A stretch of 63,873 nt of DNA, the filler included, from Guillardia theta CCMP2712 (Eukaryota > Protista > Cryptophyta): assembly GCF_000315625.1 (NCBI RefSeq). It is 5 parts of 5 records of this genome, joined end to end, with 100 filler letters (N's around TTAATTAATTAA, not from the genome) between each part and the next. Parts side by side here need not be neighbours in the genome. Positions count along the whole stretch, not along the records: positions 1 to 24,262 come from NW_005434519.1; 4 more parts are not named here. The stretch is one strand, 5' to 3'. Below the pieces are notes generated by a model. It was not told the DNA's origin, did not search any database, and was given only the letters and a program-made list of their open reading frames with translations. Both the position numbers and the translations under genes were made by a program. Numbering within the stretch: the first letter of the stretch is position 1; every line of letters begins with the position of its first letter. Of the stretch, positions 1,408 through 24,242 are shown one piece after another.

Positions 1408-4400
1408 ATGTCAGGCAACAGATCCAAGCGAAGGCGCGATGCCGAGATGCACGAGAGCAGACCCTCAAGGCAAAGGACGCGTCAAGGACATGTCCAGGAT
1501 CTACATGCCCCACCTGAAGAGGAAGCGGCGGAGCTGAACCCATGGAATGCTCGAGGGAACGAGAGGGAGATCGCCGCGACGGAGGTAACGGAGATGAGGA
1601 AGAGACTACAAGCAGCGCGAGAAAGCCGCGATGGAGAGAAGATAGCCTTTGCAGAGATAGATTTAGCGAAGGCGAAGCTGGGAGCAGCGAACAAGGCTGG
1701 GGACGAGAGGGTGATCGCGGCAGCAAAAGTCGAGGTCGCGGAGGCGAAGCTGAGAGGGGAGGTCGAGGTCGCGGAGGCGAAACTGGGAGAAGCGAACAAG
1801 GCTGGGGACGAGAGGGTGATCGCGGCGGCGAAAGTCAAGGTCGCGGAGGCGAAGCTGAGAGGGGAGGTCGAGGTCGCGGAGGCGAAACTGGGAGAAGCGA
1901 ACAAGGCTGGGGACGAGAGGAAGATCGCGGAGGTCGAGGTCGCGGAGGCGAAGGCGAAGCTGAGAGGGGAGGTCGAGGACGAGAGGGTGATCGCGGCGGC
2001 GAAAGTCAAGGTCGCGGAGGCGAGGAAGATCGCGGCGGCGAAAGTCAAGGTCGCCGGAGGCGAAGCAGAGAGGGGAGGTCGAGGTCGCGGAGGCGAAGCT
2101 GAGAGAGGAGGTCGAGGTCGCGAAGGCGAAGCAGAGAGGGGAGGTCGAGGTCGCGGAGGCGAAGCTGGGAGCAGCGAACAAGGCTGGGGACGAGAGGAAG
2201 ATCGCGGCGGCGAAAGTCAAGGTCGCGGAGGCGAAGCAGAGAGGGGAGGTCGAGGTCGCGGAGGCGAAGCAGAGAGGGGAGGTCGAGGTCGCGGAGGCGA
2301 AGCAGAGAGGGGAGGTCGAGGTCGCGAAGGCGAAGCTGGGAGCAGCGAACAAGGCTGGGGACGAGAGGGAGATCGAGGCGGCGATAGTCGAGGTCGCGAA
2401 GGCGGAGCTGAGAGGGGAGGTCAAGGTCACGAAGGCGAAGCTGAGAGGGGAGGTCGAGGTCGCGGAGGCGAAGCTGGTTGATGCGCAAACCAAGAATCAG
2501 ACCCAGTTAGTAGATGATTTGCAGCGCTCTTTGTACCTCAATCAGTGCAAGCTTGCAGACTTTGATGCATCGTTGCCTATGCGGTTGGATACGGAAGGTA
2601 ACCTGTACTTGCTGAGATTGTGTGCTGCCGTGCGGAGGGTTGAGGTGGTTTGAAAAGGCGAAGCGCTGAATGTTTTCCTGCAGTGTTGCATGCGGTGTCT
2701 CTCAAGTATCGCATTGCGCTGGGAGAGGTCGTTGACACGCTGAAGAGACACCTAGGCGAAGTGCTGGGATCAAGAACGGGAGCATTCAGCCAAAGGAACC
2801 CCATCGACAAAGTAGTAGCAGAAGCGGGAAGAAAAGCCGGGATTGTTACTTGTATGATCGAGGCATGCTCGGGGAGCGGGAAATCGTTGAGTGCTGTAGA
2901 CTACTTCGTACGAAATCCAAAGACATCGCTTTATTGCTTGTTCGGATACATCCAGGAACAGGATTTATATCTGATTGTACGAGGCATCTCGCACATGATC
3001 AATGCAGCCATCGATCTTGATCTCCAGGCGTGTGATCGCAGGATCGATTACCTTGACCCAACAAAATGCGAGCAGGAAGTCTTGACGATCGACCTGCACG
3101 CGTACAGCTGGAACTTGCTTGGTGTTGTGGGATACCTGCTTGGCAAGACGACGGGCCCAGGAAAGGTGCGCGTGGAGGAAGCAAAGCTGTGGACAGAGAA
3201 GGAGCACCTGTGGGTGTTGGTCGATGAAGCAATCCCGAGGTATCAAGGTATGCCCTGCCGCACTAACGCCTTATGGAGGCTGTTGTTCCTCAAGAGGATG
3301 CTTCGTAATGCAGGCTTTCATTGCATCATGCTGGGTACCAACACTCTGGTGATGAATTTCAACAATGCTTTACAGCAGACGAGAAATAGCCGAGGCAAGA
3401 ACCAAGAGACTATCAAGTGCATCACCCATCGAGCTCTTCCTCCGATGATCCTTCAGTCTGATGAGCAGCGCGATATCCTGAAGCAGGTGTTTGGGGAAGA
3501 GATGATTGAGGGGTTGCTCGACAATGTCAACCCCATGCTCTGCCACCTATTCTTCAAGTATTGGAGTGGTGGACAAGGGAAAGATAGCGCGACCTTGTTT
3601 CGAGATCTAGCAAATCCACTGTTGGCCATAGTACGAGGTGACAAGAAAAGCCTCAAGGACTCATCGTTGTACTGTATGTTTCAGATAGCAACGCACGAAA
3701 GCATGTGCCAGGCGCACATCTTGCAAGGCTTTGGTGTCCTCAATGCTTGGCCGATGAGCCAAGTCCCTGCACGCGGCAGCTCGGAGTCAATCGTTGAGCT
3801 TAAACGGACCGACAATCAGATTGAGATGAATGGGATCGAACTCAACGACTTGACTAGCAAGTTCCCGCCAAGCTGGGTAGACCCCATCACCGTCGCGATC
3901 TGTGCTGGCGGGGGGAGACCTTTCGGGAACAACTCGAGCCTTGAGGTGTTGAGGAGGATCCACCGAGACGCTCTGAAGCCCATGGATGATCCAACAGCAG
4001 TAGATGCGCTGCGCCGAGACGGGAACCTGCTGGAGTCGTTTGGAGGAGTCGTGGTGATGTTGACGAGCTGGGCCGATCCTGAGGACATTCTTTCAACCCT
4101 CAGCCATCATTGCGGAAGGGAAGTGAGAGGCAAAGTGAAGGAGGTGCTTGGTTGCGTGAAGGATGAAGCATCAGCACGGGAGTTCCGCAAAGTCTTGACT
4201 CAGTGCTTCTGTAATCTGATCCCCTTGCGGGACGGTGACGATGAGATGCCTAACCATAAAGCTTTCGGGTACTACACTCGATGCAAGGACAAGCGGAGAC
4301 GGGACGGAGAGTTTGTGGGCCCCGTCCACGGTCCTGATGGCCAAAGCAGCATGAGGGGAGCAGCGGAGTTTAAGAACCGGAGAAAGCCTCTTGGTCAATC

Positions 4401-4704
4401 GCAGCTCACGAAGTTTGTGAAGAAACTAGCCAACGACAATCACAACCTCCTGTTGTTCATGGCTCCGGCGCTAGGAGAGTTCAAGGCTGAGAACATCCTA
4501 CCGACAGATGGAGATGCCACGTGGTTGGTTCTGCATTGGACGATGGACACAACGAAATACTCAGGATGGCACACTGAGGTGTTAGGCGGAAAGGCGAAGT
4601 GCAAAAGTCATAGGATACTGATCCTTATGGAGATCGGGCTGTCAACGAAACCTTTTAGTGAACCGTCGATGCAGCAAGACGAGATGGATGACGAGGACCC
4701 GTGA
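1408..4704 (+). pseudogene. Crinkler(CR)-like NTPase-nuclease gene, copy 1, frameshifted in the repeat header
   Basis: Exons 1408-2597 and 2684-4704 total 3211 nt (3n+1). An extra C near 2055 (gtcgCcggagg versus gtcgcggagg) shifts the frame; a sequencing error is possible. Exon 2 retains Walker A ACSGSGKS, Walker B WVLVDEA and RDG...AEFKN. Confidence 0.75.
2598..2683 (+). other. 86-nt GT-AG intron of CR-like gene copy 1
   Basis: GAAG|GTAACC...GCTGAATGTTTTCCTGCAG|TG, identical to the intron in copies 2 and 3. Confidence 0.85.
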
Positions 4705-4820
4705 AGATGGATGACGAGGACCCGTGAAGGTGGATGACGAGGACCCGTGAAGATGGATGACGAGGACCCGTGAAGATGGATGACGAGGACCCGTGAAGAT
4801 GGATGACGAGGACCCGTGAA
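4683..4820 (+). repeat. 23-bp tandem array (GATGGATGACGAGGACCCGTGAA) x6
   Basis: 138 bp = 6 units. The first unit encodes the C-terminal MDDEDP-stop. Confidence 0.97.
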
Positions 4821-5747
4821 GCAACCGGGAGATGATCGCTCAGAGACGCAGACCAATGAGGGATGCTGGACTCGGTAGAGGAGAACCAGAGACCGAGAAA
4901 AGATGACGAAGCGACGAAGAGGACGTGAGAGCTTTGTTTGTGCTGGTCTTGTCTCATAAGGAAGCTCGCAAGCCTGGACCATAGTAGGGTGAGAAGTCTA
5001 CTGCTTGCCGCAGCCCGGGTAAGGGCGAGGATGCCAACACGCTCTTGCCATGGTAGACTCTCAAGCAAGGCGATTGGTGGGAGCTAGAACGGCCGGGGGA
5101 GGGAGGGGTACCTTGTTGTAACTTGAATACCAGCATTAAAAGTGTGTCTACAATAAACAGCCCTCTGTTCCCAACGTGGTGTAATGTTCTCTCTCTGGCA
5201 GCCGCAGTCGAGCCGCAGTCAAGCACAATATCGTCCTGCCACGAATGTGGGATGCCTATCTCGCCATCACTTCTCGGAGCTTGCATCTTCAGGGCGCGAT
5301 AAGGGTTCAGAGACCGCCGTGGATCCAGGCGGCTTTGCTGCCCTCGGGGAAAATCACATCCCTCCGATGAGCCACCAGATGCGATGCCGAGCTGACCTGT
5401 CTCGCACCGAGTCCCATGGATCTCACTGCATCGCACGTCGCTTGCAACCACGAGAGTCCTCTTTGAGCCTGGCAAGCGCATGCCTGCTCTTGCTCCATCC
5501 CCGTCTGAAGCTTCAGGAGCGCGTGCGACATCGTCAGTGCCGCTGGAGCCAGTTCAAGTACCCACACAGGTGTGGAGCGTGTCGCTGCATCTACACACCA
5601 AGAGCCAAGATGATGCATAAGGCTCCACACACAAAGACCAGAGCAACCGCCACGCAGCGATCACGCATGCACACCTGCTTGATGTGGCGCCCTCAGCGAG
5701 GCTCACGAGTCGCCATGGCCCGCCATTGAAATATGGCTAGGGTACTG

Positions 5748-5850
5748 CATCAACCAGCTTCGCCTTCGCGACCTCTACCTCCGTCAACGTGATCTCCCCC
5801 TCGTTCCCAGCCTTGTTCGCTGCTCGCTACTTCGCTTCCACGACCTGGAG
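5748..5850 (-). pseudogene. Short inverted remnant of the CR-like header repeat
   Basis: catcaaccagcttcgccttcgcgacctc...ccagccttgttcgctgc is the reverse complement of header repeats. It occupies the same position as the longer inverted copy in unit 2. Confidence 0.75.
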
Positions 5851-6198
5851 TCCGCAGATATTGGAGACCATGATGAGGAGCGGTAAGGGAATAGGTCGGA
5901 GATGTTTCAATTGAGGTCAAGGTAATATTGGGTACGGTCGGACCCCAATTGGCCACGAGGACATCGGTGCGAGAGGCTATGGCGCCGGCAAAAACGAGGG
6001 ATAACAAAGAGGGAGGAGGCGGGGGAGCGAGAGACAGGGAGGACATGGCGGCAGAGGGCGAAGGACACGATGCAGGCAAGTCGGCAGGCAAGCATGGCAG
6101 GGCAAATGACCACAACCATGGCGATGAGAAGGTAAGCTAGGTTCCCCCCTGAAGCTCGTGACTTGCCCTGCTCCATTTGCCGGCTTCCATAATCTCCT

Positions 6199-6790
6199 CT
6201 TCTCGCTCTAGTTGACATCAAACTTGATGTGCAATGCTGGGAACGTACTATCATCTCCCGTCCTTGAGCGTACTATCATCTCCCGTCCTTGAACCTCATC
6301 TCCCGTCATTGAACGTGGCTACTTGTTTCATATGGCACACCCCTCGGCATGAGCCCCCACCCCTCCCCATGGCTGAGCCAGCAGTAGCTGCCTGATCTCA
6401 CACGTGCTCGCAGGACTTCGTCTTGGTTGATGTGTTCTCGCAAGTCGTCAAGGTTCCCATCAGGGCAGACACTTCGGTCTCAGACGTCTGCGCCCTTCTC
6501 GCTCTAGTTGACATCAAACTTGATGTGCAATGCTGGGAACGTACTATCATCTCCCGTCCTTGAGCGTACTATCATCTCCCGTCCTTGAACCTCATCTCCC
6601 GTCATTGAACGTGGCTACTTGTTTCATATGGCACACCCCTCGGCATGAGCCCCCACCCCTCCCCATGGCTGAGCCAGCAGTAGCTGCCTGATCTCACACG
6701 TGCTCGCAGGACTTCGTCTTGGTTGATGTGTTCTCGCAAGTCGTCAAGGTTCCCATCAGGGCAGACACTTCGGTCTCAGACGTCTGCGAC
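6199..6790 (+). repeat. 296-bp direct tandem duplication covering the upstream region and 5' end of the Ubl-like gene
   Basis: 6199-6494 recurs at 6495-6790 (cggcATG at 6349 and 6645). Confidence 0.9.
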
Positions 6791-8109
6791 CACCTCGCAT
6801 CGCTATACCCAGAGCTCACCCCAGAGCACCTGTACACTTGTGACGGCTGCGAGTTGATGATGGAGGACTTGCTGTGCGATGTGTGTGTAGCAGGAGAACA
6901 CCTTCTGCTGGCGTTGGGAACAACCGACGATGAGAGGAAAAAGTCTACTGTGCTGAGCTCCCTCGGAATCTTCCATGGGGTTCCCAGGACTGCGTTCCAG
7001 CCGATGCCAGCGAGAGTGACGTCGTCGTCCTCATGTTCCCTCCTGACGGGTCAGTGTATCCTCAACCCGAGGATAGCCTCCTCCTTGAAGAAGCTCTGCA
7101 TAGCAGTGGAGGGAGAGTGCCATTCAAGCCTGACTTATGGGTTGAGGGCTGACTCTGCCCAGAAGCCGCGCGTTCTGACGAGTGTGTGTGTGGACACGTC
7201 GAGCTTGAAGCATCTTGTCGTGGTCGGAGGAAAGTCAAACTTGAAGAGCGTCGGGGACCTCGTCCGATGGGTGAGGGCGAGGATGGGAGGTATCCCTTCC
7301 TAGGTTCGCTTGCATGCGTACGTCTTCTCCAACCTAGGGAGTGATGTTCGCGAGGACGAGAGTGAGAAGGATTGGTTCGAGGAGCTGGATGACAGGTGAA
7401 GGAGTTGTTCTCGTCTTCATCACCTGGTGTTCTGCTGCCAGCACTGCCATCCCGGTGCTGTCCAAGAACGAGAATCTTCTCATCAGTACAGAGGTTACGC
7501 CAGGTTCAAGGACAACATTAGCGACCTGATGCGAACTGACGTGAAATTGTTGATGTCAGTTGTGTTATCGAAGAAGGATTCATTGGTGTGGAAGACAACT
7601 CACGACGGAGGTCAGGCGATGTACGGAAAGAAGGCCCTTGCCTTCGATCCCTTGAGGTTGGACGATTTCAGCTGCCTCGTCGAGAGCCTGGTACCGACCT
7701 CACGACCTCTTGTCCGATGTTGGGGTAAACTGTCACCACAGGCCGACTCCTTCAATTTTTTACACAAGATGCAGCTGTGTGCTACGGAGGTGGCAGGAGT
7801 GGGGACATTTCTCAACGGGGAGGTTCGTTTCAATGGTATCCCAGTGGAAATTCCGTCCTTGCAGGATCTGAGGATCACGTTGCGGATCACCTCGCGCTCC
7901 GAGTCAGCGCACAACGGGGGGAAGAGCCTTGTACTGAGGCCTTACTTTGGGGACGAGAGTGTCTGGTGTCACCTCCCCCCTCACGGCCACGTCCTTCCCT
8001 TCTTCTTCACCGCTGGGCCTAACATGATCTTCACTCCGTGCTTGGAAACGGTCCTGCCTGCCAGCCAGCCTGCCTGCCTGCCTACCTGCCTGTCATTCTC
8101 TTCTTCCTC

Positions 8110-8143
<34 letters not shown>

Positions 8144-8450
8144 GTTGTCGTTGCGTTTTCTCAGCATTCCTTGATTGTATAAAGTCCCTGCTCGTTATGT
8201 GTGCGCTGGAGAAGCTTTCTCTTTCATCTGACGTCAATCGCAGATTGACGTGCTCAGCTGGGCGACGTCTCCTCAGATCAAAGTACTTGTTGTTTTCCCA
8301 CAAAAATGTTCTTCTCACTGCTGTATCAGTCTTTCTCGAAGGACGATCTCATCATTCTCATTTCGAGAATATCAGCGCCCAGGTATGACAACAACAAACC
8401 TTCCTCTATCCGACTACAAACGCACCTACAAGTATGTCGGAGAAGCGTAA
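6645..8450 (+). pseudogene. Ubiquitin-like-domain gene, unit-1 copy, with premature stops
   Basis: Near-identical to 13959-15771, but TTA>TGA near 6689 and TGG>TAG at 7301-7303. Confidence 0.7.
8112..8142 (+). repeat. (TG)n microsatellite
   Basis: Visible directly. The paralogous tract at about 15427-15463 is three units longer. Confidence 0.95.
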
Positions 8451-8940
8451 TCTACCCGCTCCTTCTATGTAAATTCTCTCTCAGCATACTTCACTACTTC
8501 ACTTGACTGATCGCTCAGTCGCTTTCACTGTCCGAGGCTGCTGTTGAGAGTCCGTCCGCGATCCATTGCCACCGTAGCTCGGGGGACTATCACACGTGGG
8601 AGAAGCCTCGGATCGGATCTAGTATCGTCATGCCGACTAACTTGCCATGAACTTTCAGCTTTCGGGCCCGTGACTTGGAGTAAACTTGCCTCGAGAATCC
8701 GGGCCGGGCCCCGGCCGACCGTCCGACCGCCGACCGGGTCACCGTCGGGGCGGCCGGGCCGCGCCGGTCACTGGGGCCCGGGGGGGCCGGTTTACAAGCC
8801 GCGCCCGAGGCTCTATAGAGGGGGTGTACTTTCAAATCGGACCCCGTCCACGTGAAATTGAGAGCGGGCATTTCAAATAGAACCTCCAATCCTCCTGCTC
8901 CGCTCCAAATCCCCTCGAAATCAAGCGCCATTCGAGCAGC

Positions 8941-11900
8941 ATGTCAGGCAACAGATCCAAGCGAAGGCGCGATGCCGAGATGCACGAGAGCAGACCCTCA
9001 AGGCAAAGGACGCGTCAAGGACATGTCCAGGATCTACATGCCCCACCTGAAGAGGAAGCGGCGGAGCTGAACCCATGGAATGCTCGAGGGAACGAGAGGG
9101 AGATCGCCGCGACGGAGGTAACGGAGATGAGGAAGAGACTACAAGCAGCGCGAGAAAGCCGCGATGGAGAGAAGATAGCCTTTGCAGAGATAGATTTAGC
9201 GAAGGCGAAGCTGGGAGCAGCGAACAAGGCTGGGGACGAGAGGGTGATCGCGGCAGCAAAAGTCGAGGTCGCGGAGGCGAAGCTGAGAGGAGAGGTCGAG
9301 GTCGCGGAGGCGAAACTGGGAGAAGCGAACAAGGCTGGGGACGAGAGGGTGATCGCGGCGGCGAAAGTCAAGGTCGCGGAGGCGAAGCAGAGAGGGGAGG
9401 TCGAGGTCGCGGAGGCGAAGCTGAGAGAGGAGGTCGAGGTCGCGAAGGCGAAGCAGAGAGGGGAGGTCGAGGTCGCGGAGGCGAAGCTGGGAGCAGCGAA
9501 CAAGGCTGGGGACGAGAGGGAGATCGCGGCGGCGAAAGTCACGGTCGCGGAGGCGAAGCAGAGAGGGGAGGTCGAGGTCGCGGAGGCGAAGCTGAGAGGG
9601 GAGGTCGAGGTCGCGAAGGCGAAGCAGAGAGGGGAGGTCGAGGTCGCGAAGGCGAAGCTGGGAGCAGCGAACAAGGCTGGGGACGAGAGGAAGATCGCGG
9701 CGGCGAAAGTCGAGGTCGCGGAGGCGAAGCAGAGAGGGGAGGTCGAGGTCGCGGAGGCGAAGCAGAGAGGGGAGGTCGAGGTCGCGGAGGCGAAGCAGAG
9801 AGGGGAGGTCGAGGTCGCGGAGGCGAAGCTGGGAGCAGCGAACAAGGCTGGGGACGAGAGGGAGATCGAGGCGGCGATAGTCGAGGTCGCGAAGGCGGAG
9901 CTGAGAGGGGAGGTCAAGGTCACGAAGGCGAAGCTGAGAGGGGAGGTCGAGGTCGCGGAGGCGAAGCTGGTTGATGCGCAAACCAAGAATCAGACCCAGT
10001 TAGTAGATGATTTGCAGCGCTCTTTGTACCTCAATCAGTGCAAGCTTGCAGACTTTGATGCATCGTTGCCTATGCGGTTGGATACGGAAGGTAACCTGTA
10101 CTTGCTGAGATTGTGTGCTGCCGTGCGGAGGGTTGAGGTGGTTTGAAAAGGCGAAGCGCTGAATGTTTTCCTGCAGTGTTGCATGCGGTGTCTCTCAAGT
10201 ATCGCATTGCGCTGGGAGAGGTCGTTGACACGCTGAAGAGACACCTAGGCGGAGTGCTGGGATCAAGAACGGGAGCATTCAGCCAAAGGAACCCCATCGA
10301 CAAAGTAGTAGCAGAAGCGGGAAGAAAAGCCGGGATTGTTACTTGTATGATCGAGGCATGCTCGGGGAGCGGGAAATCGCTGAGTGCTGTAGACTACTTC
10401 GTACGAAATCCAAAGACATCGCTTTATTGCTTGTTCGGATACATCCAGGAACAGGATTTATATCTGATTGTACGAGGCATCTCGCACATGATCAATGCAG
10501 CCATCGATCTTGATCTCCAGGCGTGTGATCGCAGGATCGATTACCTTGACCCAACAAAATGCGAGCAGGAAGTCTTGACGATCGACCTGCACGCGTACAG
10601 CTGGAACTTGCTTGGTGTTGTGGGATACCTGCTTGGCAAGACGACGGGCCCAGGAAAGGTGCGCGTGGAGGAAGCAAAGCTGTGGACAGAGAAGGAGCAC
10701 CTGTGGGTGTTGGTCGATGAAGCAATCCCGAGGTATCAAGGTATGCCCTGCCGCACTAATGCCTTATGGAGGCTGTTGTTCCTCAAGAGGATGCTTCGTA
10801 ATGCAGGCTTTCATTGCATCATGCTGGGTACCAACACTCTGGTGATGAATTTCAACAATGCTTTACAGCAGACGAGAAATAGCCGAGGCAAGAACCAAGA
10901 GACTATCAAGTGCATCACCCATCGAGCTCTTCCTCCGATGATCCTTCAGTCTGATGAGCAGCGCGATATCCTGAAGCAGGTGTTTGGGGAAGAGATGATT
11001 GAGGGGTTGCTCGACAATGTCAACCCCATGCTCTGCCACCTATTCTTCAAGTATTGGAGAGGTGGACAAGGGAAAGATAGCGCGACCTTGTTTCGAGATC
11101 TAGCAAATCCACTGTTGGCCTTAGTACGAAGTGACAAGAAAAGCCTCAAGGACTCATCGTTGTACTGTATGTTTCAGATAGCAACGCACGAAAGCATGTG
11201 CCAGGCGCACATCTTGCAAGGCTTTGGTGTCCTCAATGCTTGGCCGATGAGCCAAGTCCCTGCACGCGGCAGCTCGGAGTCAATCGTTGAGCTTAAACGG
11301 ACCGACAATCAGATTGAGATGAATGGGATCGAACTCAACGACTTGACTAGCAAGTTCCCGCCAAGCTGGGTAGACCCCATCACCGTCGCGATCTGTGCTG
11401 GCGGGGGGAGACCTTTCGGGAACAACTCGAGCCTTGAGGTGTTGAGGAGGATCCACCGAGACGCTCTGAAGCCCATGGATGATCCAACAGCAGTAGATGC
11501 GCTGCGCCGAGACGGGAACCTGCTGGAGTCGTTTGGAGGAGTCGTGGTGATGTTGACGAGCTGGGCCGATCCTGAGGACATTCTTTCAACCCTCAGCCAT
11601 CATTGCGGAAGGGAAGTGAGAGGCAAAGTGAAGGAGGTGCTTGGTTGCGTGAAGGATGAAGCATCAGCACGGGAGTTCCGCAAAGTCTTGACTCAGTGCT
11701 TCTGTAATCTGATCCCCTTGCGGGACAGTGACGATGAGATGCCTAACCATAAAGCTTTCGGGTACTACATTCGATGCAAGGACAAGCGGAGACGGGACGG
11801 AGAGTTTGTGGGCCCCGTCCACAGTCCTGATGGCCAAAGCAGCATGAGGGGAGCAGCGGAGTTTAAGAACCGGAGAAAGCCTCTTGGTCAATCGCAGCTC

Positions 11901-15464: not shown

Positions 15465-15771
15465 GTTGTCGTTGCGTTTTCTCAGCATTCCTTGATTGTA
15501 TAAAGTCCCTGCTCGTTATGTGTGCGCTGGAGAAGCTTTCTCTTTCATCTGACGTCAATCGCAGATTGACGTGCTCAGCTGGGCGACGTCTCCTCAGATC
15601 AAAGTACTTGTTGTTTTCCCACAAAAATGTTCTTCTCACTGCTGTATCAGTCTTTCTCGAAGGACGATCTCATCATTCTCATTTCGAGAATATCAGCGCC
15701 CAGGTATGACAACAACAAACCTTCCTCTATCCGACTACAAACGCACCTACAAGTATGTCGGAGAAGCGTAA
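13959..15771 (+). CDS. Multi-exon protein with an N-terminal ubiquitin-like domain, function unknown
   Basis: VLVDVFSQVVKVPIRADTSVSDVCDHLASLYPELTPEHLYTCDGCELMMEDLL resembles a beta-grasp/Ubl pattern. Introns 14711-14756 and 14819-14874 join consecutive ORFs in frame. The 3' exons are uncertain; the likely end is ...YKYVGEA*. Confidence 0.6.
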
Positions 15772-16260
15772 TCTACCCGCTCCTTCTATGTAAATTCTCT
15801 CTCAGCATACTTCACTACTTCACTTGACTGATCGCTCAGTCGCTTTCACTGTCCGAGGCTGCTGTTGAGAGTCCGTCCGCGATCCATTGCCACCGTAGCT
15901 CGGGGGACTATCACACGTGGGAGAAGCCTCGGATCGGATCTAGTATCGTCATGCCGACTAACTTGCCATGAACTTTCAGCTTTCGGGCCCGTGACTTGGA
16001 GTAAACTTGCCTCGAGAATCCGGGCCGGGCCCCGGCCGACCGTCCGACCGCCGACCGGGTCACCGTCGGGGCGGCCGGGCCGCGCCGGTCACTGGGGCCC
16101 GGGGGGGCCGGTTTACAAGCCGCGCCCGAGGCTCTATAGAGGGGGTGTACTTTCAAATCGGACCCCTCCACGTGAAATTGAGAGCGGGCATTTCAAATAG
16201 AACCTCCAATCCTCCTGCTCCGCTCCAAATCCCCTCGAAATCAAGCGCCATTCGAGCAGC

Positions 16261-19200
16261 ATGTCAGGCAACAGATCCAAGCGAAGGCGCGATGCCGAGA
16301 TGCACGAGAGCAGACCCTCAAGGCAAAGGACGCGTCAAGGACATGTCCAGGATCTACATGCCCCACCTGAAGAGGAAGCGGCGGAGCTGAACCCATGGAA
16401 TGCTCGAGGGAACGAGAGGGAGATCGCCGCGACGGAGGTAACGGAGATGAGGAAGAGACTACAAGCAGCGCGAGAAAGCCGCGATGGAGAGAAGATAGCC
16501 TTTGCAGAGATAGATTTAGCGAAGGCGAAGCTGGGAGCAGCGAACAAGGCTGGGGACGAGAGGGTGATCGCGGCAGCAAAAGTCGAGGTCGCGGAGGCGA
16601 AGCTGAGAGGAGAGGTCGAGGTCGCGGAGGCGAAACTGGGAGAAGCGAACAAGGCTGGGGACGAGAGGGTGATCGCGGCGGCGAAAGTCAAGGTCGCGGA
16701 GGCGAAGCAGAGAGGGGAGGTCGAGGTCGCGGAGGCGAAACTGGGAGAAGCGAACAAGGCTGGGGACGAGAGGAAGATCGCGGCGGCGAAAGTCAAGGTC
16801 GCGGAGGCGAAGCTGAGAGGGGAGGTCGAGGTCGCTGATGCGAGACTGGGAGAAGCAAACAAGGCTGGGGACGAGAGGGTGATCGCGGCGGCGAAAGTCA
16901 AGGTCGCGGAGGCGAAGCAGAGAGGGGAGGTCGAGGTCGCGGAGGCGAAGCTGAGAGAGGAGGTTGTGGTCGGGAAGGCGAAGCAGAGAGGGGAGGTCGA
17001 GGTCGCGGAGGCGAAACTGGGAGCAGCGAACAAGGCTGGGGCCGAGAGGAAGATCGCGGCGGCGAAAGTCGAGGTCGCGGAGGCGAAGCAGAGAGGGGAG
17101 GTCGAGGTCGCGGAGGCGAAGCTGAGAGGGGAGGTCGAGGTCGCGGAGGCGAAGCTGGGAGCAGCGAACAAGGCTGGGGACGAGAGGAAGATCGCGGCGG
17201 CGAAAGTCAAGGTCGCGGAGGCGAAGCTGAGAGGGGAGGTCGAGGTCGCGGAGGCGAAGCTGAGAGGGGAGGTCGAGGTCGCGGAGGCGAAGCTGAGAGA
17301 GGAGGTCGAGGTCGCGAAGGCGAAGCTGGGAGCAGCGAACAAGGCTGGGGACGAGAGGAAGATCGCGGCGGCGAAAGTCGAGGTCGCGGAGGCGAAGCTG
17401 AGAGGGGAGGTCGAGGTCGCGGAGGCGAAGCAGAGAGGGGAGGTCGAGGTCGCGGAGGCGAAGCAGAGAGGGGAGGTCGAGGTCGCGAAGGCGAAGCTGG
17501 GAGCAGCGAACAAGGCTGGGGACGAGAGGGAGATCGAGGCGGCGATAGTCGAGGTCGCGAAGGCGGAGCTGAGAGGGGAGGTCAAGGTCACGAAGGCGAA
17601 GCTGAGAGGGGAGGTCGAGGTCGCGGAGGCGAAGCTGGTTGATGCGCAAACCAAGAATCAGACCCAGTTAGTAGATGATTTGCAGCGCTCTTTGTACCTC
17701 AATCAGTGCAAGCTTGCAGACTTTGATGCATCGTTGCCTATGCGGTTGGATACGGAAGGTAACCTGTACTTGCTGAGATTGTGTGCTGCCGTGCGGAGGG
17801 TTGAGGTGGTTTGAAAAGGCGAAGCGCTGAATGTTTTCCTGCAGTGTTGCATGCGGTGTCTCTCAAGTATCGCATTGCGCTGGGAGAGGTCGTTGACACG
17901 CTGAAGAGACACCTAGGCGAAGTGCTGGGATCAAGAACGGGAGCATTCAGCCAAAGGAACCCCATCGACAAAGTAGTAGCAGAAGCGGGAAGAAAAGCCG
18001 GGATTGTTACTTGTATGATCGAGGCATGCTCGGGGAGCGGGAAATCGCTGAGTGCTGTAGACTACTTCGTACGAAATCCAAAGACATCGCTTTATTGCTT
18101 GTTCGGATACATCCAGGAACAGGATTTATATCTGATTGTACGAGGCATCTCGCACATGATCAATGCAGCCATCGATCTTGATCTCCAGGCGTGTGATCGC
18201 AGGATCGATTACCTTGACCCAACAAAATGCGAGCAGGAAGTCTTGACGATCGACCTGCACGCGTACAGCTGGAACTTGCTTGGTGTTGTGGGATACCTGT
18301 TTGGCAAGACGACGGGCCCAGGAAAGGTGCGCGTGGAGGAAGCAAAGCTGTGGACAGAGAAGGAGCACCTGTGGGTGTTGGTCGATGAAGCAATCCCGAG
18401 GTATCAAGGTATGCCCTGCCGCACTAATGCCTTATGGAGGCTGTTGTTCCTCAAGAGGATGCTTCGTAATGCAGGCTTTCATTGCATCATGCTGGGTACC
18501 AACACTCTGGTGATGAATTTCAACAATGCTTTACAGCAGACGAGAAATAGCCGAGGCAAGAACCAAGAGACTATCAAGTGCATCACCCATCGAGCTCTTC
18601 CTCCGATGATCCTTCAGTCTGATGAGCAGCGCGATATCCTGAAGCAGGTGTTTGGGGAAGAGATGATTGAGGGGTTGCTCGACAATGTCAACCCCATGCT
18701 CTGCCACCTATTCTTCAAGTATTGGAGAGGTGGACAAGGGAAAGATAGCGCGACCTTGTTTCGAGATCTAGCAAATCCACTGTTGGCCATAGTACGAGGT
18801 GACAAGAAAAGCCTCAAGGACTCATCGTTGTACTGTATGTTTCAGATAGCAACGCACGAAAGCATGTGCCAGGCGCACATCTTGCAAGGCTTTGGTGTCC
18901 TCAATGCTTGGCCGATGAGCCAAGTCCCTGCACGCGGCAGCTCGGAGTCAATCGTTGAGCTTAAACGGACCGACAATCAGATTGAGATGAATGGGATCGA
19001 ACTCAACGACTTAACTAGCAAGTTCCCGCCAAGCTGGGTAGACCCCATCACCGTCGCGATCTGTGCTGGCGGGGGGAGACCTTTCGGGAACAACTCGAGC
19101 CTTGAGGTGTTGAGGAGGATCCACCGAGACGCTCTGAAGCCCATGGATGATCCAACAGCAGTAGATGCGCTGCGCCGAGACGGGAACCTGCTGGAGTCGT

Positions 19201-19865
19201 TTGGAGGAGTCGTGGTGATGTTGACGAGCTGGGCCGATCCTGAGGACATTCTTTCAACCCTCAGCCATCATTGCGGAAGGGAAGTGAGAGGCAAAGTGAA
19301 GGAGGTGCTTGGTTGCGTGAAGGATGAAGCATCAGCACGGGAGTTCCGCAAAGTCTTGACTCAGTGCTTCTGTAATCTGATCCCCTTGCGGGACAGTGAC
19401 GATGAGATGCCTAACCATAAAGCTTTCGGGTACTACATTCGATGCAAGGACAAGCGGAGACGGGACGGAGAGTTTGTGGGCCCCGTCCACAGTCCTGATG
19501 GCCAAAGCAGCATGAGGGGAGCAGCGGAGTTTAAGAACCGGAGAAAGCCTCTTGATCAATCGCAGCTCACGAAGTTTGTGAAGAAACTAGCCAACGACAA
19601 TCACAACCTCCTGTTGTTCATGGCTCCGGCGCTAGGAGAGTTCAAGGCTGAGAACATCCTACCGACAGATGGAGATGCCACGTGGTTGGTTCTGCATTGG
19701 ACGATGGACACAACGAAATACTCAGGATGGCACACTGAGGTGTTAGGCGGAAAGGCGAAGTGCAAAAGTCATAGGATACTGATCCTTATGGAGATCGGGC
19801 TGTCAACGAAACCTTTTAGTGAACCATCGATGCAGCAAGACGAGATGGATGACGAGGACCCGTGA
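16261..19865 (+). CDS. Crinkler(CR)-like protein copy 3 (1172 aa spliced, expanded header)
   Basis: Exons 16261-17758 and 17845-19865 total 3519 nt in frame; intron 17759-17844. The header is 116 aa longer than in copy 2. Confidence 0.8.
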
Positions 19866-20142
19866 AGATGGATGACGAGGACCCGTGAAGATGGATGCCG
19901 AGGACCCATGAAGATGGATGACGAGGACCCGTGAAGATGGATGACGAGGACCCGTGAAGATGGATGACGAGGACCCGTGAAGATGGATGCCGAGGACCCG
20001 TGAAGATGGATGACGAGGACCCGTGAAGATGGATGACGAGGACCCGTGAAGATGGATGACGAGGACCCGTGAAGATGGATGACGAGGACCCGTGAAGATG
20101 GATGACGAGGACCCGTGAAGATGGATGACGAGGACCCGTGAA
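19844..20142 (+). repeat. 23-bp tandem array x13
   Basis: 299 bp = 13 units, a few with single substitutions. Confidence 0.97.
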
Positions 20143-22011
20143 GCCGGGATTGTTACTTGTATGATCGAGGCATGCTCGGGGAGCGGGAAATCGCTGAGTG
20201 CTGTAGACTACTTCGTACGAAATCCAAAGACATCGCTTTATTGCTTGTTCGGATACATCCAGGAACAGGATTTATATCTGATTGTACGAGGCATCTCGCA
20301 CATGATCAATGCAGCCATCGATCTTGATCTCCAGGCGTGTGATCGCAGGATCGATTACCTTGACCCAACAAAATGCGAGCAGGAAGTCTTGACGATCGAC
20401 CTGCACGCGTACAGCTGGAACTTGCTTGGTGTTGTGGGATACCTGTTTGGCAAGACGACGGGCCCAGGAAAGGTGCGCGTGGAGGAAGCAAAGCTGTGGA
20501 CAGAGAAGGAGCACCTGTGGGTGTTGGTCGATGAAGCAATCCCGAGGTATCAAGGTATGCCCTGCCGCACTAATGCCTTATGGAGGCTGTTGTTCCTCAA
20601 GAGGATGCTTCGTAATGCAGGCTTTCATTGCATCATGCTGGGTACCAACACTCTGGTGATGAATTTCAACAATGCTTTACAGCAGACGAGAAATAGCCGA
20701 GGCAAGAACCAAGAGACTATCAAGTGCATCACCCATCGAGCTCTTCCTCCGATGATCCTTCAGTCTGATGAGCAGCGCGATATCCTGAAGCAGGTGTTTG
20801 GGGAAGAGATGATTGAGGGGTTGCTCGACAATGTCAACCCCATGCTCTGCCACCTATTCTTCAAGTATTGGAGAGGTGGACAAGGGAAAGATAGCGCGAC
20901 CTTGTTTCGAGATCTAGCAAATCCACTGTTGGCCATAGTACGAGGTGACAAGAAAAGCCTCAAGGACTCATCGTTGTACTGTATGTTTCAGATAGCAACG
21001 CACGAAAGCATGTGCCAGGCGCACATCTTGCAAGGCTTTGGTGTCCTCAATGCTTGGCCGATGAGCCAAGTCCCTGCACGCGGCAGCTCGGAGTCAATCG
21101 TTGAGCTTAAACGGACCGACAATCAGATTGAGATGAATGGGATCGAACTCAACGACTTAACTAGCAAGTTCCCGCCAAGCTGGGTAGACCCCATCACCGT
21201 CGCGATCTGTGCTGGCGGGGGGAGACCTTTCGGGAACAACTCGAGCCTTGAGGTGTTGAGGAGGATCCACCGAGACGCTCTCAAGCCCATGGATGATCCA
21301 ACAGCAGTAGATGCGCTGCGCCGAGACGGGAACCTGCTGGAGTCGTTTGGAGGAGTCGTGGTGATGTTGACGAGCTGGGCCGATCCTGAGGACATTCTTT
21401 CAACCCTCAGCCATCATTGCGGAAGGGAAGTGAGAGGCAAAGTGAAGGAGGTGCTTGGTTGCGTGAAGGATGAAGCATCAGCACGGGAGTTCCGCAAAGT
21501 CTTGACTCAGTGCTTCTGTAATCTGATCCCCTTGCGGGACAGTGACGATGAGATGCCTAACCATAAAGCTTTCGGGTACTACATTCGATGCAAGGACAAG
21601 CGGAGACGGGACGGAGAGTTTGTGGGCCCCGTCCACGGTCCTGATGGCCAAAGCAGCATGAGGGGAGCAGCGGAGTTTAAGAACCGGAGAAAGCCTCTTG
21701 ATCAATCGCAGCTCACGAAGTTTGTGAAGAAACTAGCCAACGACAATCACAACCTCCTGTTGTTCATGGCTCCGGCGCTAGGAGAGTTCAAGGCTGAGAA
21801 CATCCTACCGACAGATGGAGATGCCACGTGGTTGGTTCTGCATTGGACGATGGACACAACGAAATACTCAGGATGGCACACTGAGGTGTTAGGCGGAAAG
21901 GCGAAGTGCAAAAGTCATAGGATACTGATCCTTATGGAGATCGGGCTGTCAACGAAACCTTTTAGTGAACCATCGATGCAGCAAGACGAGATGGATGACG
22001 AGGACCCGTGA
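20125..22011 (+). CDS. Headerless CR-like NTPase-nuclease, copy 4 (628 aa ORF; ATG supplied by the 23-bp repeat)
   Basis: Begins MTRTRE (second frame of the repeat) fused to AGIVTCMIEACSGSGKS. All NTPase and nuclease motifs are intact. Expression is unknown. Confidence 0.6.
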   Translation: MTRTREAGIVTCMIEACSGSGKSLSAVDYFVRNPKTSLYCLFGYIQEQDLYLIVRGISHMINAAIDLDLQACDRRIDYLDPTKCEQEVLTIDLHAYSWNLLGVVGYLFGKTTGPGKVRVEEAKLWTEKEHLWVLVDEAIPRYQGMPCRTNALWRLLFLKRMLRNAGFHCIMLGTNTLVMNFNNALQQTRNSRGKNQETIKCITHRALPPMILQSDEQRDILKQVFGEEMIEGLLDNVNPMLCHLFFKYWRGGQGKDSATLFRDLANPLLAIVRGDKKSLKDSSLYCMFQIATHESMCQAHILQGFGVLNAWPMSQVPARGSSESIVELKRTDNQIEMNGIELNDLTSKFPPSWVDPITVAICAGGGRPFGNNSSLEVLRRIHRDALKPMDDPTAVDALRRDGNLLESFGGVVVMLTSWADPEDILSTLSHHCGREVRGKVKEVLGCVKDEASAREFRKVLTQCFCNLIPLRDSDDEMPNHKAFGYYIRCKDKRRRDGEFVGPVHGPDGQSSMRGAAEFKNRRKPLDQSQLTKFVKKLANDNHNLLLFMAPALGEFKAENILPTDGDATWLVLHWTMDTTKYSGWHTEVLGGKAKCKSHRILILMEIGLSTKPFSEPSMQQDEMDDEDP

Positions 22012-22311
22012 AGATGGATGACGAGGACCCGTGAAGATGGATGACGAGGACCCGTGAAGATGGATGACGAGGACCCGTGAAGATGGATGACGAGGACCCG
22101 TGAAGATGGATGACGAGGACCCGTGAAGATGGATGACGAGGACCCGTGAAGATGGATGACGAGGACCCGTGAAGATGGATGACGAGGACCCGTGAAGATG
22201 GATGACGAGGACCCGTGAAGATGGATGACGAGGACCCGTGAAGATGGATGACGAGGACCCGTGAAGATGGATGACGAGGACCCGTGAAGATGGATGACGA
22301 GGACCCGTGAA
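21990..22311 (+). repeat. 23-bp tandem array x14
   Basis: 322 bp = 14 units. Confidence 0.97.
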
Positions 22312-24180
22312 GCCGGGATTGTTACTTGTATGATCGAGGCATGCTCGGGGAGCGGGAAATCGCTGAGTGCTGTAGACTACTTCGTACGAAATCCAAAGAC
22401 ATCGCTTTATTGCTTGTTCGGATACATCCAGGAACAGGATTTATATCTGATTGTACGAGGCATCTCGCACATGATCAATGCAGCCATCGATCTTGATCTC
22501 CAGGCGTGTGATCGCAGGATCGATTACCTTGACCCAACAAAATGCGAGCAGGAAGTCTTGACGATCGACCTGCACGCGTACAGCTGGAACTTGCTTGGTG
22601 TTGTGGGATACCTGTTTGGCAAGACGACGGGCCCAGGAAAGGTGCGCGTGGAGGAAGCAAAGCTGTGGACAGAGAAGGAGCACCTGTGGGTGTTGGTCGA
22701 TGAAGCAATCCCGAGGTATCAAGGTATGCCCTGCCGCACTAATGCCTTATGGAGGCTGTTGTTCCTCAAGAGGATGCTTCGTAATGCAGGCTTTCATTGC
22801 ATCATGCTGGGTACCAACACTCTGGTGATGAATTTCAACAATGCTTTACAGCAGACGAGAAATAGCCGAGGCAAGAACCAAGAGACTATCAAGTGCATCA
22901 CCCATCGAGCTCTTCCTCCGATGATCCTTCAGTCTGATGAGCAGCGCGATATCCTGAAGCAGGTGTTTGGGGAAGAGATGATTGAGGGGTTGCTCGACAA
23001 TGTCAACCCCATGCTCTGCCACCTATTCTTCAAGTATTGGAGAGGTGGACAAGGGAAAGATAGCGCGACCTTGTTTCGAGATCTAGCAAATCCACTGTTG
23101 GCCATAGTACGAAGTGACAAGAAAAGCCTCAAGGACTCATCGTTGTACTGTATGTTTCAGATAGCAACGCACGAAAGCATGTGCCAGGCGCACATCTTGC
23201 AAGGCTTTGGTGTCCTCAATGCTTGGCCGATGAGCCAAGTCCCTGCACGCGGCAGCTCGGAGTCAATCGTTGAGCTTAAACGGACCGACAATCAGATTGA
23301 GATGAATGGGATCGAACTCAACGACTTAACTAGCAAGTTCCCGCCAAGCTGGGTAGACCCCATCACCGTCGCGATCTGTGCTGGCGGGGGGAGACCTTTC
23401 GGGAACAACTCGAGCCTTGAGGTGTTGAGGAGGATCCACCGAGACGCTCTCAAGCCCATGGATGATCCAACAGCAGTAGATGCGCTGCGCCGAGACGGGA
23501 ACCTGCTGGAGTCGTTTGGAGGAGTCGTGGTGATGTTGACGAGCTGGGCCGATCCTGAGGACATTCTTTCAACCCTCAGCCATCATTGCGGAAGGGAAGT
23601 GAGAGGCAAAGTGAAGGAGGTGCTTGGTTGCGTGAAGGATGAAGCATCAGCACGGGAGTTCCGCAAAGTCTTGACTCAGTGCTTCTGTAATCTGATCCCC
23701 TTGCGGGACAGTGACGATGAGATGCCTAACCATAAAGCTTTCGGGTACTACATTCGATGCAAGGACAAGCGGAGACGGGACGGAGAGTTTGTGGGCCCCG
23801 TCCACAGTCCTGATGGCCAAAGCAGCATGAGGGGAGCAGCGGAGTTTAAGAACCGGAGAAAGCCTCTTGGTCAATCGCAGCTCACGAAGTTTGTGAAGAA
23901 ACTAGCCAACGACAATCACAACCTCCTGTTGTTCATGGCTCCGGCGCTAGGAGAGTTCAAGGCTGAGAACATCCTACCGACAGATGGAGATGCCACGTGG
24001 TTGGTTATGCATTGGTCGATGGACACAACGAAATACTCAGGATGGCACACTGAGGTGTTAGGCGGAAAGGCGAAGTGCAAAAGTCATAGGATACTGATCC
24101 TTATGGAGATCGGGCTGTCAACGAAACCTTTTAGTGAACCATCGATGCAGCAAGACGAGATGGATGACGAGGACCCGTGA
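22294..24180 (+). CDS. Headerless CR-like NTPase-nuclease, copy 5 (628 aa ORF)
   Basis: Same 5' breakpoint as copy 4 (cccgtgaagccgggattgtt). Confidence 0.6.
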   Translation: MTRTREAGIVTCMIEACSGSGKSLSAVDYFVRNPKTSLYCLFGYIQEQDLYLIVRGISHMINAAIDLDLQACDRRIDYLDPTKCEQEVLTIDLHAYSWNLLGVVGYLFGKTTGPGKVRVEEAKLWTEKEHLWVLVDEAIPRYQGMPCRTNALWRLLFLKRMLRNAGFHCIMLGTNTLVMNFNNALQQTRNSRGKNQETIKCITHRALPPMILQSDEQRDILKQVFGEEMIEGLLDNVNPMLCHLFFKYWRGGQGKDSATLFRDLANPLLAIVRSDKKSLKDSSLYCMFQIATHESMCQAHILQGFGVLNAWPMSQVPARGSSESIVELKRTDNQIEMNGIELNDLTSKFPPSWVDPITVAICAGGGRPFGNNSSLEVLRRIHRDALKPMDDPTAVDALRRDGNLLESFGGVVVMLTSWADPEDILSTLSHHCGREVRGKVKEVLGCVKDEASAREFRKVLTQCFCNLIPLRDSDDEMPNHKAFGYYIRCKDKRRRDGEFVGPVHSPDGQSSMRGAAEFKNRRKPLGQSQLTKFVKKLANDNHNLLLFMAPALGEFKAENILPTDGDATWLVMHWSMDTTKYSGWHTEVLGGKAKCKSHRILILMEIGLSTKPFSEPSMQQDEMDDEDP

Positions 24181-24242
24181 AGATGGATGACGAGGACCCG
24201 TGAAGATGGATGCCGAGGACCCATGAAGATGGATGACGAGGA
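24159..24242 (+). repeat. 23-bp tandem array x3 plus a partial unit, next to the contig end
   Basis: Three units and a partial unit, then about 20 bp before the gap. Confidence 0.9.

Follow-up and report, generated by a model that had tools for sequence, protein, structure and literature searches.

Crinkler (CR) proteins most commonly carry a C-terminal design in which a header is followed by an NTPase and a restriction endonuclease (REase) domain, together with an HTH. For this NTPase–REase module the proposed working design is that of an ATPase licensing a nuclease, with nuclear, DNA-directed action, and the CR modules are thought to be derived from prokaryotic transposons. Non-Ubl α-helical headers and non-secreted intracellular versions have already been described among CR proteins (PMC5289972). 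The genome of the cryptophyte alga Guillardia theta CCMP2712 harbors, at positions 1408–24242 of the window (the whole stretch of DNA analysed, 63,873 nucleotides in length), an array of genes with a comparable design. CR proteins and the array genes are alike in the order of header, P-loop NTPase, helical DNA-binding-like region and REase-fold nuclease, as well as in their lineage-specific expansion with head-to-tail copies, and nuclear DNA-directed action has been proposed for both. The array header, in contrast, is a tandem 11/24-aa charged repeat and not a Ubl/LxLFLAK header. In contrast to the setting of Crinkler delivery, the host of the array genes is a free-living phototroph; hence, translocation into a host is not expected. 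The scheme of CR NTPase, HTH and REase, along with the CR-NTPase and CR-REase profiles, reportedly goes back to Zhang et al. 2016. The initial annotation had recognized header, NTPase and REase as the CR architecture; this agrees with the review cited above, and a C-terminal NTPase and an REase fold were both found here.

The locus belongs to a large gene family, one subfamily of which has recently been amplified here into a tandem array. It comprises three units (A, B, and C) of ∼7.3–7.5 kb, two 5′-truncated units (D and E) of ∼2.15 kb and one inverted fragment of 918 nt, and the gene bodies are 99.2–99.7% identical between copies. The initial count of five forward copies and one inverted partial copy, all near-identical, was therefore correct, with D and E being header-less. 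Unit A (1155–4965, gene at 1408–4704, forward strand) has an intact exon 2 (2684–4704). A frameshift within the repeats puts its header ORF (1408–2481) out of phase with the splice donor at 2597, and A as assembled therefore cannot encode the fused protein. Unit B (8654–12503, forward) contains an intact gene with a spliced protein of 1056 aa. Unit C (15975 to ∼20005, forward; gene at 16261–19865) is likewise intact, encodes a protein of 1172 aa and has the longest header, with exon 1 at 16261–17758, the intron at 17759–17844 and exon 2 at 17845–19865. The truncated unit D (20141–22151, annotated at 20125–22011, forward) holds a 628-aa ORF, and unit E (22310–24242, annotated at 22294–24180, forward), which runs to the contig end at 24262, is a second such copy with the same junction. 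Both lack the header and intron as well as some 50 residues at the beginning of exon 2. In unit D, the start ATG lies within the last 23-mer of a minisatellite, the ORF enters the NTPase in frame shortly before Walker A, and the junction falls at a short AGC/CCGGGA microhomology.

The 23-nt minisatellite was detected by TRF at 12175–12337 in unit B (7.1 copies, forward strand) and at 4682–4821 (6.1 copies), 19843–20143 (13.1), 21989–22312 (14.1), and 24158–24242 (3.7). The first 23-mer of the unit B minisatellite codes for the last six residues of the protein and the TGA stop, and the C68 and C15 paralogues have no such minisatellite. Approximately 160 nt downstream of it, tail-to-tail with unit B, lies the inverted partial copy (12499–13416, reverse strand), which is the reverse complement of 9883–10797 with 98.9% identity and spans the end of the header, the retained intron and some 207 codons from the start of exon 2. 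This configuration recurs on scaffolds C281 and C456, and private variants of the inverted copy were present in RNA-type data. The spacer between A and B (4822–8653) is array-specific, has no recognizable gene and contains a perfect 296-bp tandem duplication at 6199–6790; the spacer between B and C (13417–15974) is homologous to 5769–6275 and 6592–8653. An assembly artefact was rejected as the copies differ in private substitutions, header lengths and minisatellite copy numbers and there are two spacer types. The presence of a second gene in the spacer was also rejected: Pfam gave no meaningful match for six spacer ORFs, and such ORFs are confined to the array, belong to no recognized family and are broken by interruptions in some copies. 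Scans of the window for tRNA and Rfam families gave no match. The array would have grown by unequal recombination between the ∼7.4-kb units, and a microhomology junction may have produced the 2.15-kb truncated unit, which was presumably duplicated later. The terminal 23-mer would have been expanded by slippage, with an inverted duplication occurring besides.

The array extends onto two further scaffolds, C281 (45.9 kb) and C456 (6.6 kb). The copies had been interpreted as an expanding selfish-element or intracellular defence-nuclease locus. One rival explanation is an active, self-copying transposon with the NTPase–REase gene as its cargo or engine. The resemblance of the NTPase to the transposition ATPases MuB, TnsC and TniB, the many copies of the family and the prokaryotic-transposon origin supposed for CR modules (PMC5289972) speak for such an element. 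The genome-wide copy search with flank comparison, which returned at least 53 matches to the gene (∼25 of them intact ORFs), does not: the spacer DNA and spacer ORFs were found only on C155, C281 and C456, i.e., within one array, which argues against a dispersed transposon. Moreover, the unit showed no transposase, integrase or reverse transcriptase, the amplification is strictly local and head-to-tail, and the paralogues elsewhere are 36–82% identical, with no young dispersed copies. An active mobile element is thus very improbable, and the claim of a selfish mobile element was left unsupported.

The genes of the array appear to be transcribed and spliced. In unit B, exon 1 (8941–10090, forward) encodes a basic N-terminus, a unique lead-in of ∼85 aa and the repeat header, and exon 2 (10177–12197, forward) encodes 672 aa, in which the AAA+ NTPase is followed by a helical/winged-helix-like region and then by the REase-fold domain. 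The two are separated by an 86-nt GT..AG intron (10091–10176, forward), with equivalents at 2598–2683 in A and 17759–17844 in C. It had been proposed that this intron fuses two apparently separate ORFs into one protein. In agreement with this, the frame is kept across the unit B intron (the joined protein reads ...RLDTE-V-LHAVSLKY), and a joint skipping exactly these 86 nt was present in contigs from three runs, each of a different study, the runs being presumed to be RNA. Examination of the 10090/10177 junction showed that the spliced joint was deeper than the unspliced one in two of these runs (337 vs. 84.5 and 761 vs. 324.5) and reached a depth of 5096 in the third.

The N-terminus of the unit B protein is highly charged, contains a KRRR motif in its basic stretch and has no hydrophobic signal-like segment; direct reading of the sequence thus bears out the earlier description of an NLS-like N-terminus with no signal peptide. 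It is followed by the tandem 11-aa/24-aa charged repeat. The header DNA showed periods of 33, 105, and 171 nt by TRF, and residue autocorrelation peaked at lags of 11, 35, and 57. The number of header repeats varies even between adjacent copies, with exon-1 ORF lengths of 357, 401, and 517 aa. Pfam analysis of exon 1 gave no meaningful match, and the header had no usable match in the structure-atlas search. The header had been regarded as novel. It is not specific to the array, as the same kind of repeat header, with differing sequences, was found in 10 of the 14 distant paralogues examined and in the 60%-identity C15 paralogue. From these comparisons, the 11/24-aa repeat header is family-wide and old.

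The exon-2 model predicted an AAA+ ATPase fold resembling ORC/Cdc6, MuB/TnsC and NLRs. The AAA_22/ORC/TniB-like core with its lid is placed at 10326–11183 (forward) by predicted fold and conserved motifs, and includes Walker A GSGKS (10365–10379), Walker B VLVDE (10707–10721, DE at 10716–10721) and a sensor-1-like GTN (10827–10835), all on the forward strand. The Walker A/B NTPase named in the initial annotation is thus present, with its motifs at these sites and an AAA+ fold in the model. Residues K66, D180, E181, T218, N219, and R236 were invariant across 16 members at 35–82% identity, as were GSGKS and VLVDE, which were also conserved in 28 distant relatives. Foldseek with the exon-2 model retrieved NLRC4, ORC, Apaf-1, CED-4 and TnsC at E values of 3e-5 to 1e-3. 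Fold matches of the ATPase in VIA had Z scores of 7–8.9 over 150–275 residues (WRR4A 8.9, MuB 8.3, TnsC 7.1–7.5), and the atlas shape search returned AAA_22/TniB clusters at TM 0.50–0.58. The window protein itself showed no Pfam AAA_22 match at E ≤ 1. Among the relatives, 10 of 28 matched AAA_22 and one matched TniB, mostly below threshold; relative P0110 reached 30.5 bits for AAA_22 against a cut-off of 27. The encoded protein is presumably an active ATPase.

The C-terminal ∼180 aa are predicted to form a PD-(D/E)xK (Mrr-like) REase-fold domain (11646–12128, forward; model pLDDT 81.6). The domain model has the order αβββαβ, with D56 ahead of strand 57–60 and E77-x-K79 in strand 73–78. D56, E77, and K79 of the domain correspond to D540, E561, and K563 of the 672-aa exon-2 translation. 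D535 and D540 are encoded at 11781–11798, with D540 of the RRDG motif at 11796–11798, and the E561-F-K563 (EFK) motif is encoded at 11859–11867, both on the forward strand. About 36 of the 50 best VIA matches of the C-domain were REase-fold nucleases, with Z only 2.6–4.1, and Mrr_cat clusters predominated among its atlas matches, with TM up to 0.54. The fold scores are individually weak (Z ≤ 4.1, Foldseek E ≥ 0.08, TM 0.37–0.54), and sequence-profile searches of the C-domain against Pfam, including Mrr_cat, and PDB gave noise or no match. The matches are very consistent, weak as each one is, and on this modelling the REase fold postulated for the C-terminus was recovered. D540, E561, and K563 are invariant or nearly so, with E or K of ExK lost in a few family members, and the D...ExK motif is also kept in distant relatives, as seen among others in a local hhalign alignment of profiles A1 and A3. 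These features support the nuclease-like C-terminus noted initially, and the domain would probably act as a nuclease.

The pairing of this ATPase fold with an Mrr-like REase domain is similar to that of bacterial AAA_22/TniB ATPase proteins with Mrr_cat, and atlas clusters with Mrr_cat, AAA_22 and NPHP3_N were among the matches. The likeness to the bacterial AAA_22/TniB + Mrr_cat proteins, MuB and TnsC is, however, at fold level only (TM 0.25–0.58), and the domain order is different. The array genes also differ from this group in their eukaryotic intron and header, and no transposase partner is present.

With respect to Crinklers, the proposed likeness was partly upheld. The coupling of an NTPase to a predicted REase-fold nuclease stood, whereas the Crinkler header PF20147 (Ubl, LxLFLAK-type motif) had no Pfam match on exon 1 and an HMM search against CR/RHS Pfam families (RHSP, RHS_N; PF07999, PF20445) gave no match. 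PF20147 was also absent among 38 distant relatives; in the whole genome it had 0 matches in a search that is weak, as control genomes also gave 0. A search with the chytrid protein P0064 found relatives in chytrids and metagenomes, and PF20147 was in none of them. The ESM feature similarity to a PF20147-bearing cluster was 0.91, with seven such clusters at ≥ 0.9, and the distant relative P0072 combines a ubiquitin-like header with the same NTPase and the ExK motif. The array genes share the toxic-module design with Crinklers and are missing the defining header; hence, they would represent a known kind of system in a lineage-specific form and not a new one. Among the papers searched, none named both Guillardia and Crinkler.

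Exon 2 (672 aa) matched no Pfam family. No PDB-sequence match was obtained with the single protein or with profiles A1 and A2, PADLOC returned nothing significant, and an IMG/VR scan with profile A1, a weak, pattern-based test, gave no viral relatives. The best named homologues are proteins of G. theta CCMP2712 itself, in line with the alga-like protist of the initial annotation. Further relatives are found in chytrids, one aphelid and one chrysophyte; atlas clusters add oomycetes. The family is without a Pfam model, and about 25 Guillardia genes and their relatives are at present annotated as hypothetical proteins only. Within the array dS was ≤ 0.018, compared with 0.23 to the C68 paralogue, and dN/dS to this paralogue was ∼0.4, indicating purifying selection. 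Part of the family is decaying, given the frameshift in copy A, the truncation of D and E and the stops carried by several paralogues. It is conceivable that the genes encode a domesticated housekeeping factor of DNA metabolism or form a decaying array with no current function; the ORC/Cdc6-like fold, the damaged copies and a dN/dS value that denotes moderate constraint only are compatible with this. Nevertheless, the distribution across eukaryotes is patchy, copy number is strongly lineage-dependent, the catalytic motifs are kept across paralogues at 35% identity and spliced transcripts are present in the runs presumed to be RNA, which makes a housekeeping or decayed state decidedly improbable.

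The ATPase also invites comparison with STAND/NLR proteins, with which the arrangement of NBD, helical and winged-helix regions aligns over ∼275 residues (WRR4A Z 8.9, CED-4, Apaf-1). The protein could be an NLR-like immune sensor with reversed domain order, in which the rapidly varying helical repeats at the N-terminus would recognize a ligand of viral or foreign origin. The STAND-like ATPase would then oligomerise, and defence or cell suicide would be carried out by the C-terminal nuclease, comparable to bacterial Avs proteins with their nuclease effectors. NLRC4, Apaf-1, CED-4 and plant NLRs are among the best fold matches, and the nuclease domains of bacterial Avs3/Avs4 are among those of the C-domain. 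The header variation between neighbouring copies and across distant paralogues, and the tandem arrays with many paralogues and some pseudogenes, typical of immune families, would fit as well. On the other hand, the array proteins lack a NACHT/NB-ARC signature and have the repeats at the N-terminus and the nuclease at the C-terminus. The relatives match AAA_22/TniB, ORC, MuB and TnsC score as high as NLRs, and the header matches nothing. No Pfam match to NACHT or NB-ARC was obtained in the window protein or its relatives, the N-terminal repeats are unlike LRR, TPR or WD40, and C-terminal sensor repeats are absent. An NLR-like sensor is thus unlikely.

The array most probably encodes an ATP-regulated nuclear DNA endonuclease of a genetic-conflict system, a reading we hold with reasonable though not strong confidence. 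The product of each intact, two-exon gene has a basic N-terminus and a header of charged helical repeats that varies between copies; then come the AAA+ ATPase of the AAA_22/ORC/TniB type, a helical, winged-helix-like region and the predicted Mrr-like nuclease. It may act within the alga's own nucleus, either in defence against invading DNA or in an addictive/selfish role. The ATPase would oligomerise on DNA, like ORC, MuB and TnsC, and thereby license cleavage by the nuclease. The NTPase–REase module is best known from the Crinkler effectors that oomycete and fungal pathogens carry. In this free-living alga of secondary-endosymbiotic origin, the module is joined to another kind of header, built of repeats; it has undergone massive expansion, is apparently expressed and continues to amplify. 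The finding favours regarding such modules as conflict/defence nucleases that act inside eukaryotic cells in general, and not as weapons peculiar to pathogens. The full-length genes, header-length variants and header-less truncations also offer tractable natural variants for studying ATPase control of a nuclease.

A further reading, which we consider quite unlikely, is that of an innate-immunity module of eukaryotes in which the NLR logic is reversed, having the fast-evolving N-terminal helical repeats as sensor, the ORC/TniB-like AAA+ domain as switch and the Mrr-like nuclease as effector, in which the array self-limits its dose via RNA. Transcription of B-type units would continue through the 23-mer array and on into the inverted copy, which corresponds to the 5′ part of their coding region. 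The 3′ end of such an mRNA would be self-complementary over ∼0.4–0.9 kb and thus able to form dsRNA.

Positions 1–24262 correspond to G000:C155:98738–122999, where a 123-kb scaffold of the 87.1-Mb, 669-contig assembly ends. Self-comparison and TRF resolved three long plus-strand units, A (1155–4965), B (8654–12503) and C (15975–~20005), which repeat every 7.3–7.5 kb, and two short plus-strand units, D (20141–22151) and E (22310–24242), with a period of ~2.15 kb. A fragment on the minus strand (12499–13416) is the reverse complement of 9883–10797 with 98.9% identity. The gene bodies of the array share 99.2–99.7% identity and the non-repeat part of the spacers ~97–98%. The near-identical array of five forward copies and one inverted partial copy described in the initial annotation was confirmed with corrections, and its architectural interpretation was supported. 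The A–B spacer also carries a perfect 296-bp tandem duplication (6199–6790; 2.0 copies, 100% identity), present as a single copy in the spacer of unit B. Each spacer and the left border of the array contain microsatellites of the (CCTC)n, (CCTG)n and (TG)n types (2–57, 8053–8142 and 15368–15463), and the (CCTG)n/(TG)n pair was found again at many other genome loci.

The 86-nt intron of unit B (10091–10176) is bounded by GT..AG and keeps the frame. The proposed 10090/10177 junction was found in contigs from three runs, each belonging to a different study, with a joint omitting exactly these 86 nt. Spliced and unspliced depths were 337 vs. 84.5 and 761 vs. 324.5 in two runs, and the third had a spliced depth of 5096. 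That these are RNA runs is only a guess, but a GT..AG-bounded skip alongside the unspliced form is the pattern expected of RNA data. The claim that the intron fuses two ORFs into one protein holds for units B and C, whose intact spliced proteins of 1056 and 1172 aa, respectively, each have one terminal stop, but not for the frameshifted header of unit A. The frame from ATG-1408 of unit A departs from the header frame amid the repeats, at about 1929–2060, and ends at the stop at 2481, while the frame that matches the donor at 2597 is not open before 1989. As assembled, unit A is therefore unable to encode the fused protein, its header frame being out of phase with the donor.

Strand evidence came from one stranded raw-read RNA run, in which read depth was greatest at 12188–12400 and opposite-orientation reads occurred only at 10373–10856, the part mirrored by 12499–12923. 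The two informative opposite-strand reads carried T at 10632 together with C at 10760, a pairing private to the inverted fragment. In sequencing run X1, a contig with a depth of 133 contained the private variants of the fragment at 10046 and 10065. These thin data fit transcription that leaves a B-type gene, crosses the minisatellite and enters the inverted fragment, running in the same orientation as the upstream gene; if so, the mRNA tail may be complementary to the 5′ coding part of the same transcript.

The 672-aa translation of exon 2 gave no match in Pfam, PDB sequences or PADLOC. In an alignment of 16 family members (35–82% identity), K66 in GSGKS (Walker A), D180–E181 in hhhhDE (Walker B), T218–N219 in LGTN (sensor-1-like), R236, R249, D535 and D540 were invariant. 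The N-terminal ~400 residues of the AlphaFold model (pLDDT 77, pTM 0.76) resemble AAA+/STAND ATPases; the Walker A/B NTPase assignment was upheld by both motifs and fold. Foldseek with this model retrieved NLRC4, ORC, Apaf-1, CED-4 and TnsC at E values of 3e-5 to 1e-3, and VIA-align returned WRR4A (Z 8.9), Drosophila Cdc6/ORC (8.7), MuB (8.3), archaeal Cdc6/Orc1 (8.2) and TnsC (7.1–7.5). The atlas shape search matched bacterial AAA_22 and AAA_22+TniB clusters (TM 0.50–0.58 by target). Among the distant relatives, Pfam AAA_22 was matched in 10 of 28 and TniB in one. On these combined results we assign the ATPase to the ORC/MuB/TniB-like AAA+ group rather than to NACHT or NB-ARC.

The C-terminal 188 residues, modelled separately (pLDDT 81.6), showed an alpha-beta-beta-beta-alpha-beta core, with D540 before one strand and E561-x-K563 within the following strand; E561 and K563 are nearly invariant in the 16-member alignment. 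Foldseek with this model found nothing significant (best E 0.08), the top of the list being NucS, AspBHI, BamHI, MspJI and RPB5. In an exhaustive VIA search, ~36 of the 50 best chains were PD-(D/E)xK nucleases with Z of only 2.6–4.1, including AF1548, the Avs3/Avs4 nuclease domains, OkrAI, LlaBIII, NotI, Can2, LmuA, NucS, FokI, Cap4, HamA and BglII. The atlas shape search returned Mrr_cat clusters nearly exclusively (TM up to 0.54 by target), and some of these also bear AAA_22. Single matches are weak; owing to the nuclease enrichment taken together with the D...ExK motif, a restriction endonuclease (REase) fold is clearly the best reading of the model, in keeping with the REase-like C-terminus proposed earlier. 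One array copy (L008; G000:C281:38597–40528) is an in-frame deletion variant within the nuclease domain, lacking residues ~599–625 of exon 2 and still forming one open frame of 658 codons.

The review PMC5289972, summarising Zhang et al. (2016), defines Crinkler/RHS-type (CR) proteins by their headers, usually Ubl domains, which are coupled to toxin modules at the C-terminus; P-loop NTPase + HTH + REase is the most frequent of these modules. It also mentions alpha-helical non-Ubl headers, and plant versions thought to be intracellular and aimed at invasive DNA. Given this arrangement, the architecture and proposed working principle of the CR NTPase-REase module match those of the G. theta protein, and by analogy we infer that the latter may work like this module. 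However, PF20147, the header that defines Crinklers, was found neither in the protein nor anywhere in the genome, the genome search having been run without a positive control, and no HMM-level link to CR/RHS families was obtained. Crinkler was therefore set aside as a family label, and the Crinkler-like description is valid as regards design only.

A profile search of 1.84 billion representatives gave 73 proteins. Full-length relatives outside cryptophytes (640–800 aa) occur in the chytrids Rhizoclosmatium, Obelidium, Terramyces and Gorgonomyces, the aphelid Paraphelidium and the chrysophyte Paraphysomonas. Alignments of the family and of the distant relatives matched in hhalign (probability 100%, E 5e-42, 505 columns) from Walker A through D...ExK, a motif kept in nearly all distant members. 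One distant relative, P0072, has an N-terminal ubiquitin-family domain (E 8e-7) followed by the same NTPase and ExK motif. ESM-atlas features scored Oomycota and Basidiomycota clusters at 0.96–0.98 and seven PF20147 clusters at 0.9 or above, and the best full-length shape match was an Oomycota cluster (TM 0.57 over 534 residues). The protein is a member of a eukaryotic AAA+-REase family that is unnamed and patchy in its distribution, and that probably includes the CR NTPase-REase module.

The best named homologues are hypothetical proteins of Guillardia theta CCMP2712, among them GUITHDRAFT_113579 (80% identity, 997 aa) and GUITHDRAFT_120867; Hanusia phi proteins also match. These matches mark the source as a cryptophyte alga, in line with the alga-like protist of the initial annotation. 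The genome-wide search gave at least 53 matches, ~25 of them intact ORFs of 630–780 codons, in identity tiers of 99%, 82%, 60%, 56% and 36–43%, and several sit in further local arrays on scaffolds C15, C74, C106 and C41. The C15 array (L011 and L012; G000:C15:395891–430922) holds four matches of the 60%-identity subfamily, three of them at intervals of ~7.7 kb, with nearly identical scores for two of these three; it shares the 33/105-nt header periodicity and lacks the 23-nt minisatellite. Paired genes were likewise seen on C74 (inverted), C106 and C41.

Exon 1 begins with a charged, basic segment that contains KRRR and no hydrophobic stretch, which, as sequence evidence, agrees with the suggested nuclear targeting without a signal peptide. 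In the header repeats that follow, units of 11 aa (33 nt) and 24 aa build super-repeats of 35 and 57 aa, with a residue autocorrelation of 0.43 for lag 11 and 0.78 for lag 57. The repeats are rich in A/E/V/K and vary in number among neighbouring copies. Neither Pfam on exon 1 nor the atlas search gave a known match for the header. It had been considered novel; repeats of the same type (periods of 33, 72, 105, 177 and 249 nt) lie ahead of the NTPase exon of the C15 paralogue (60% identity) and of 10 among 14 paralogues that are more distant, so the header is an old, family-wide feature rather than an array novelty.

Within the array, dS was 0–0.018, which indicates that the duplication is recent or homogenised. 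Against the C68 paralogue dS was 0.23, and the dN/dS of ~0.4 points to moderate purifying selection on the gene. The spacer DNA (4830–8650) and its ORFs were found only on C155, C281 and C456 and, over a short length, next to the C68 paralogue. As C281 (45.9 kb, 12.9 kb of N) and C456 are made of the same units, the true array exceeds the window and breaks the assembly. Unit and genome searches found no transposase and no dispersed young copies; with the spacers confined to the array, the selfish-element reading is unsupported in the sense of a transposon, and growth was probably local, via unequal recombination. The spacer ORFs 7427–8182, 13959–14714 and 14742–15503 (251–253 aa) are conserved between units and occur nowhere outside the array; they have no family match, contain stops in some copies and are probably non-coding.

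A 23-nt minisatellite closes every unit (6.1, 7.1, 13.1, 14.1 and at least 3.7 copies by TRF), and its first copy encodes the final six residues plus the stop codon. It is missing from the C68 and C15 paralogues and thus arose within the array subfamily. In units D and E, the minisatellite is joined directly to gene position 10327, and the junction shows a short AGC/CCGGGA microhomology to the usual 3′ flank. From an ATG in the last 23-mer, a 628-aa ORF continues in frame into the NTPase, entering it immediately ahead of Walker A.

A separate dispersed repeat of ~82 nt with sharp ends lies at 752–833. It was not a tRNA, matched no Rfam family and had an unremarkable fold energy (z −1.0). About 650 candidates were seen genome-wide at first look; all 40 scored places, across many contigs, were 93–95% identical to the window copy, and 11 fetched copies were 96–99% identical to one another with unrelated flanks.
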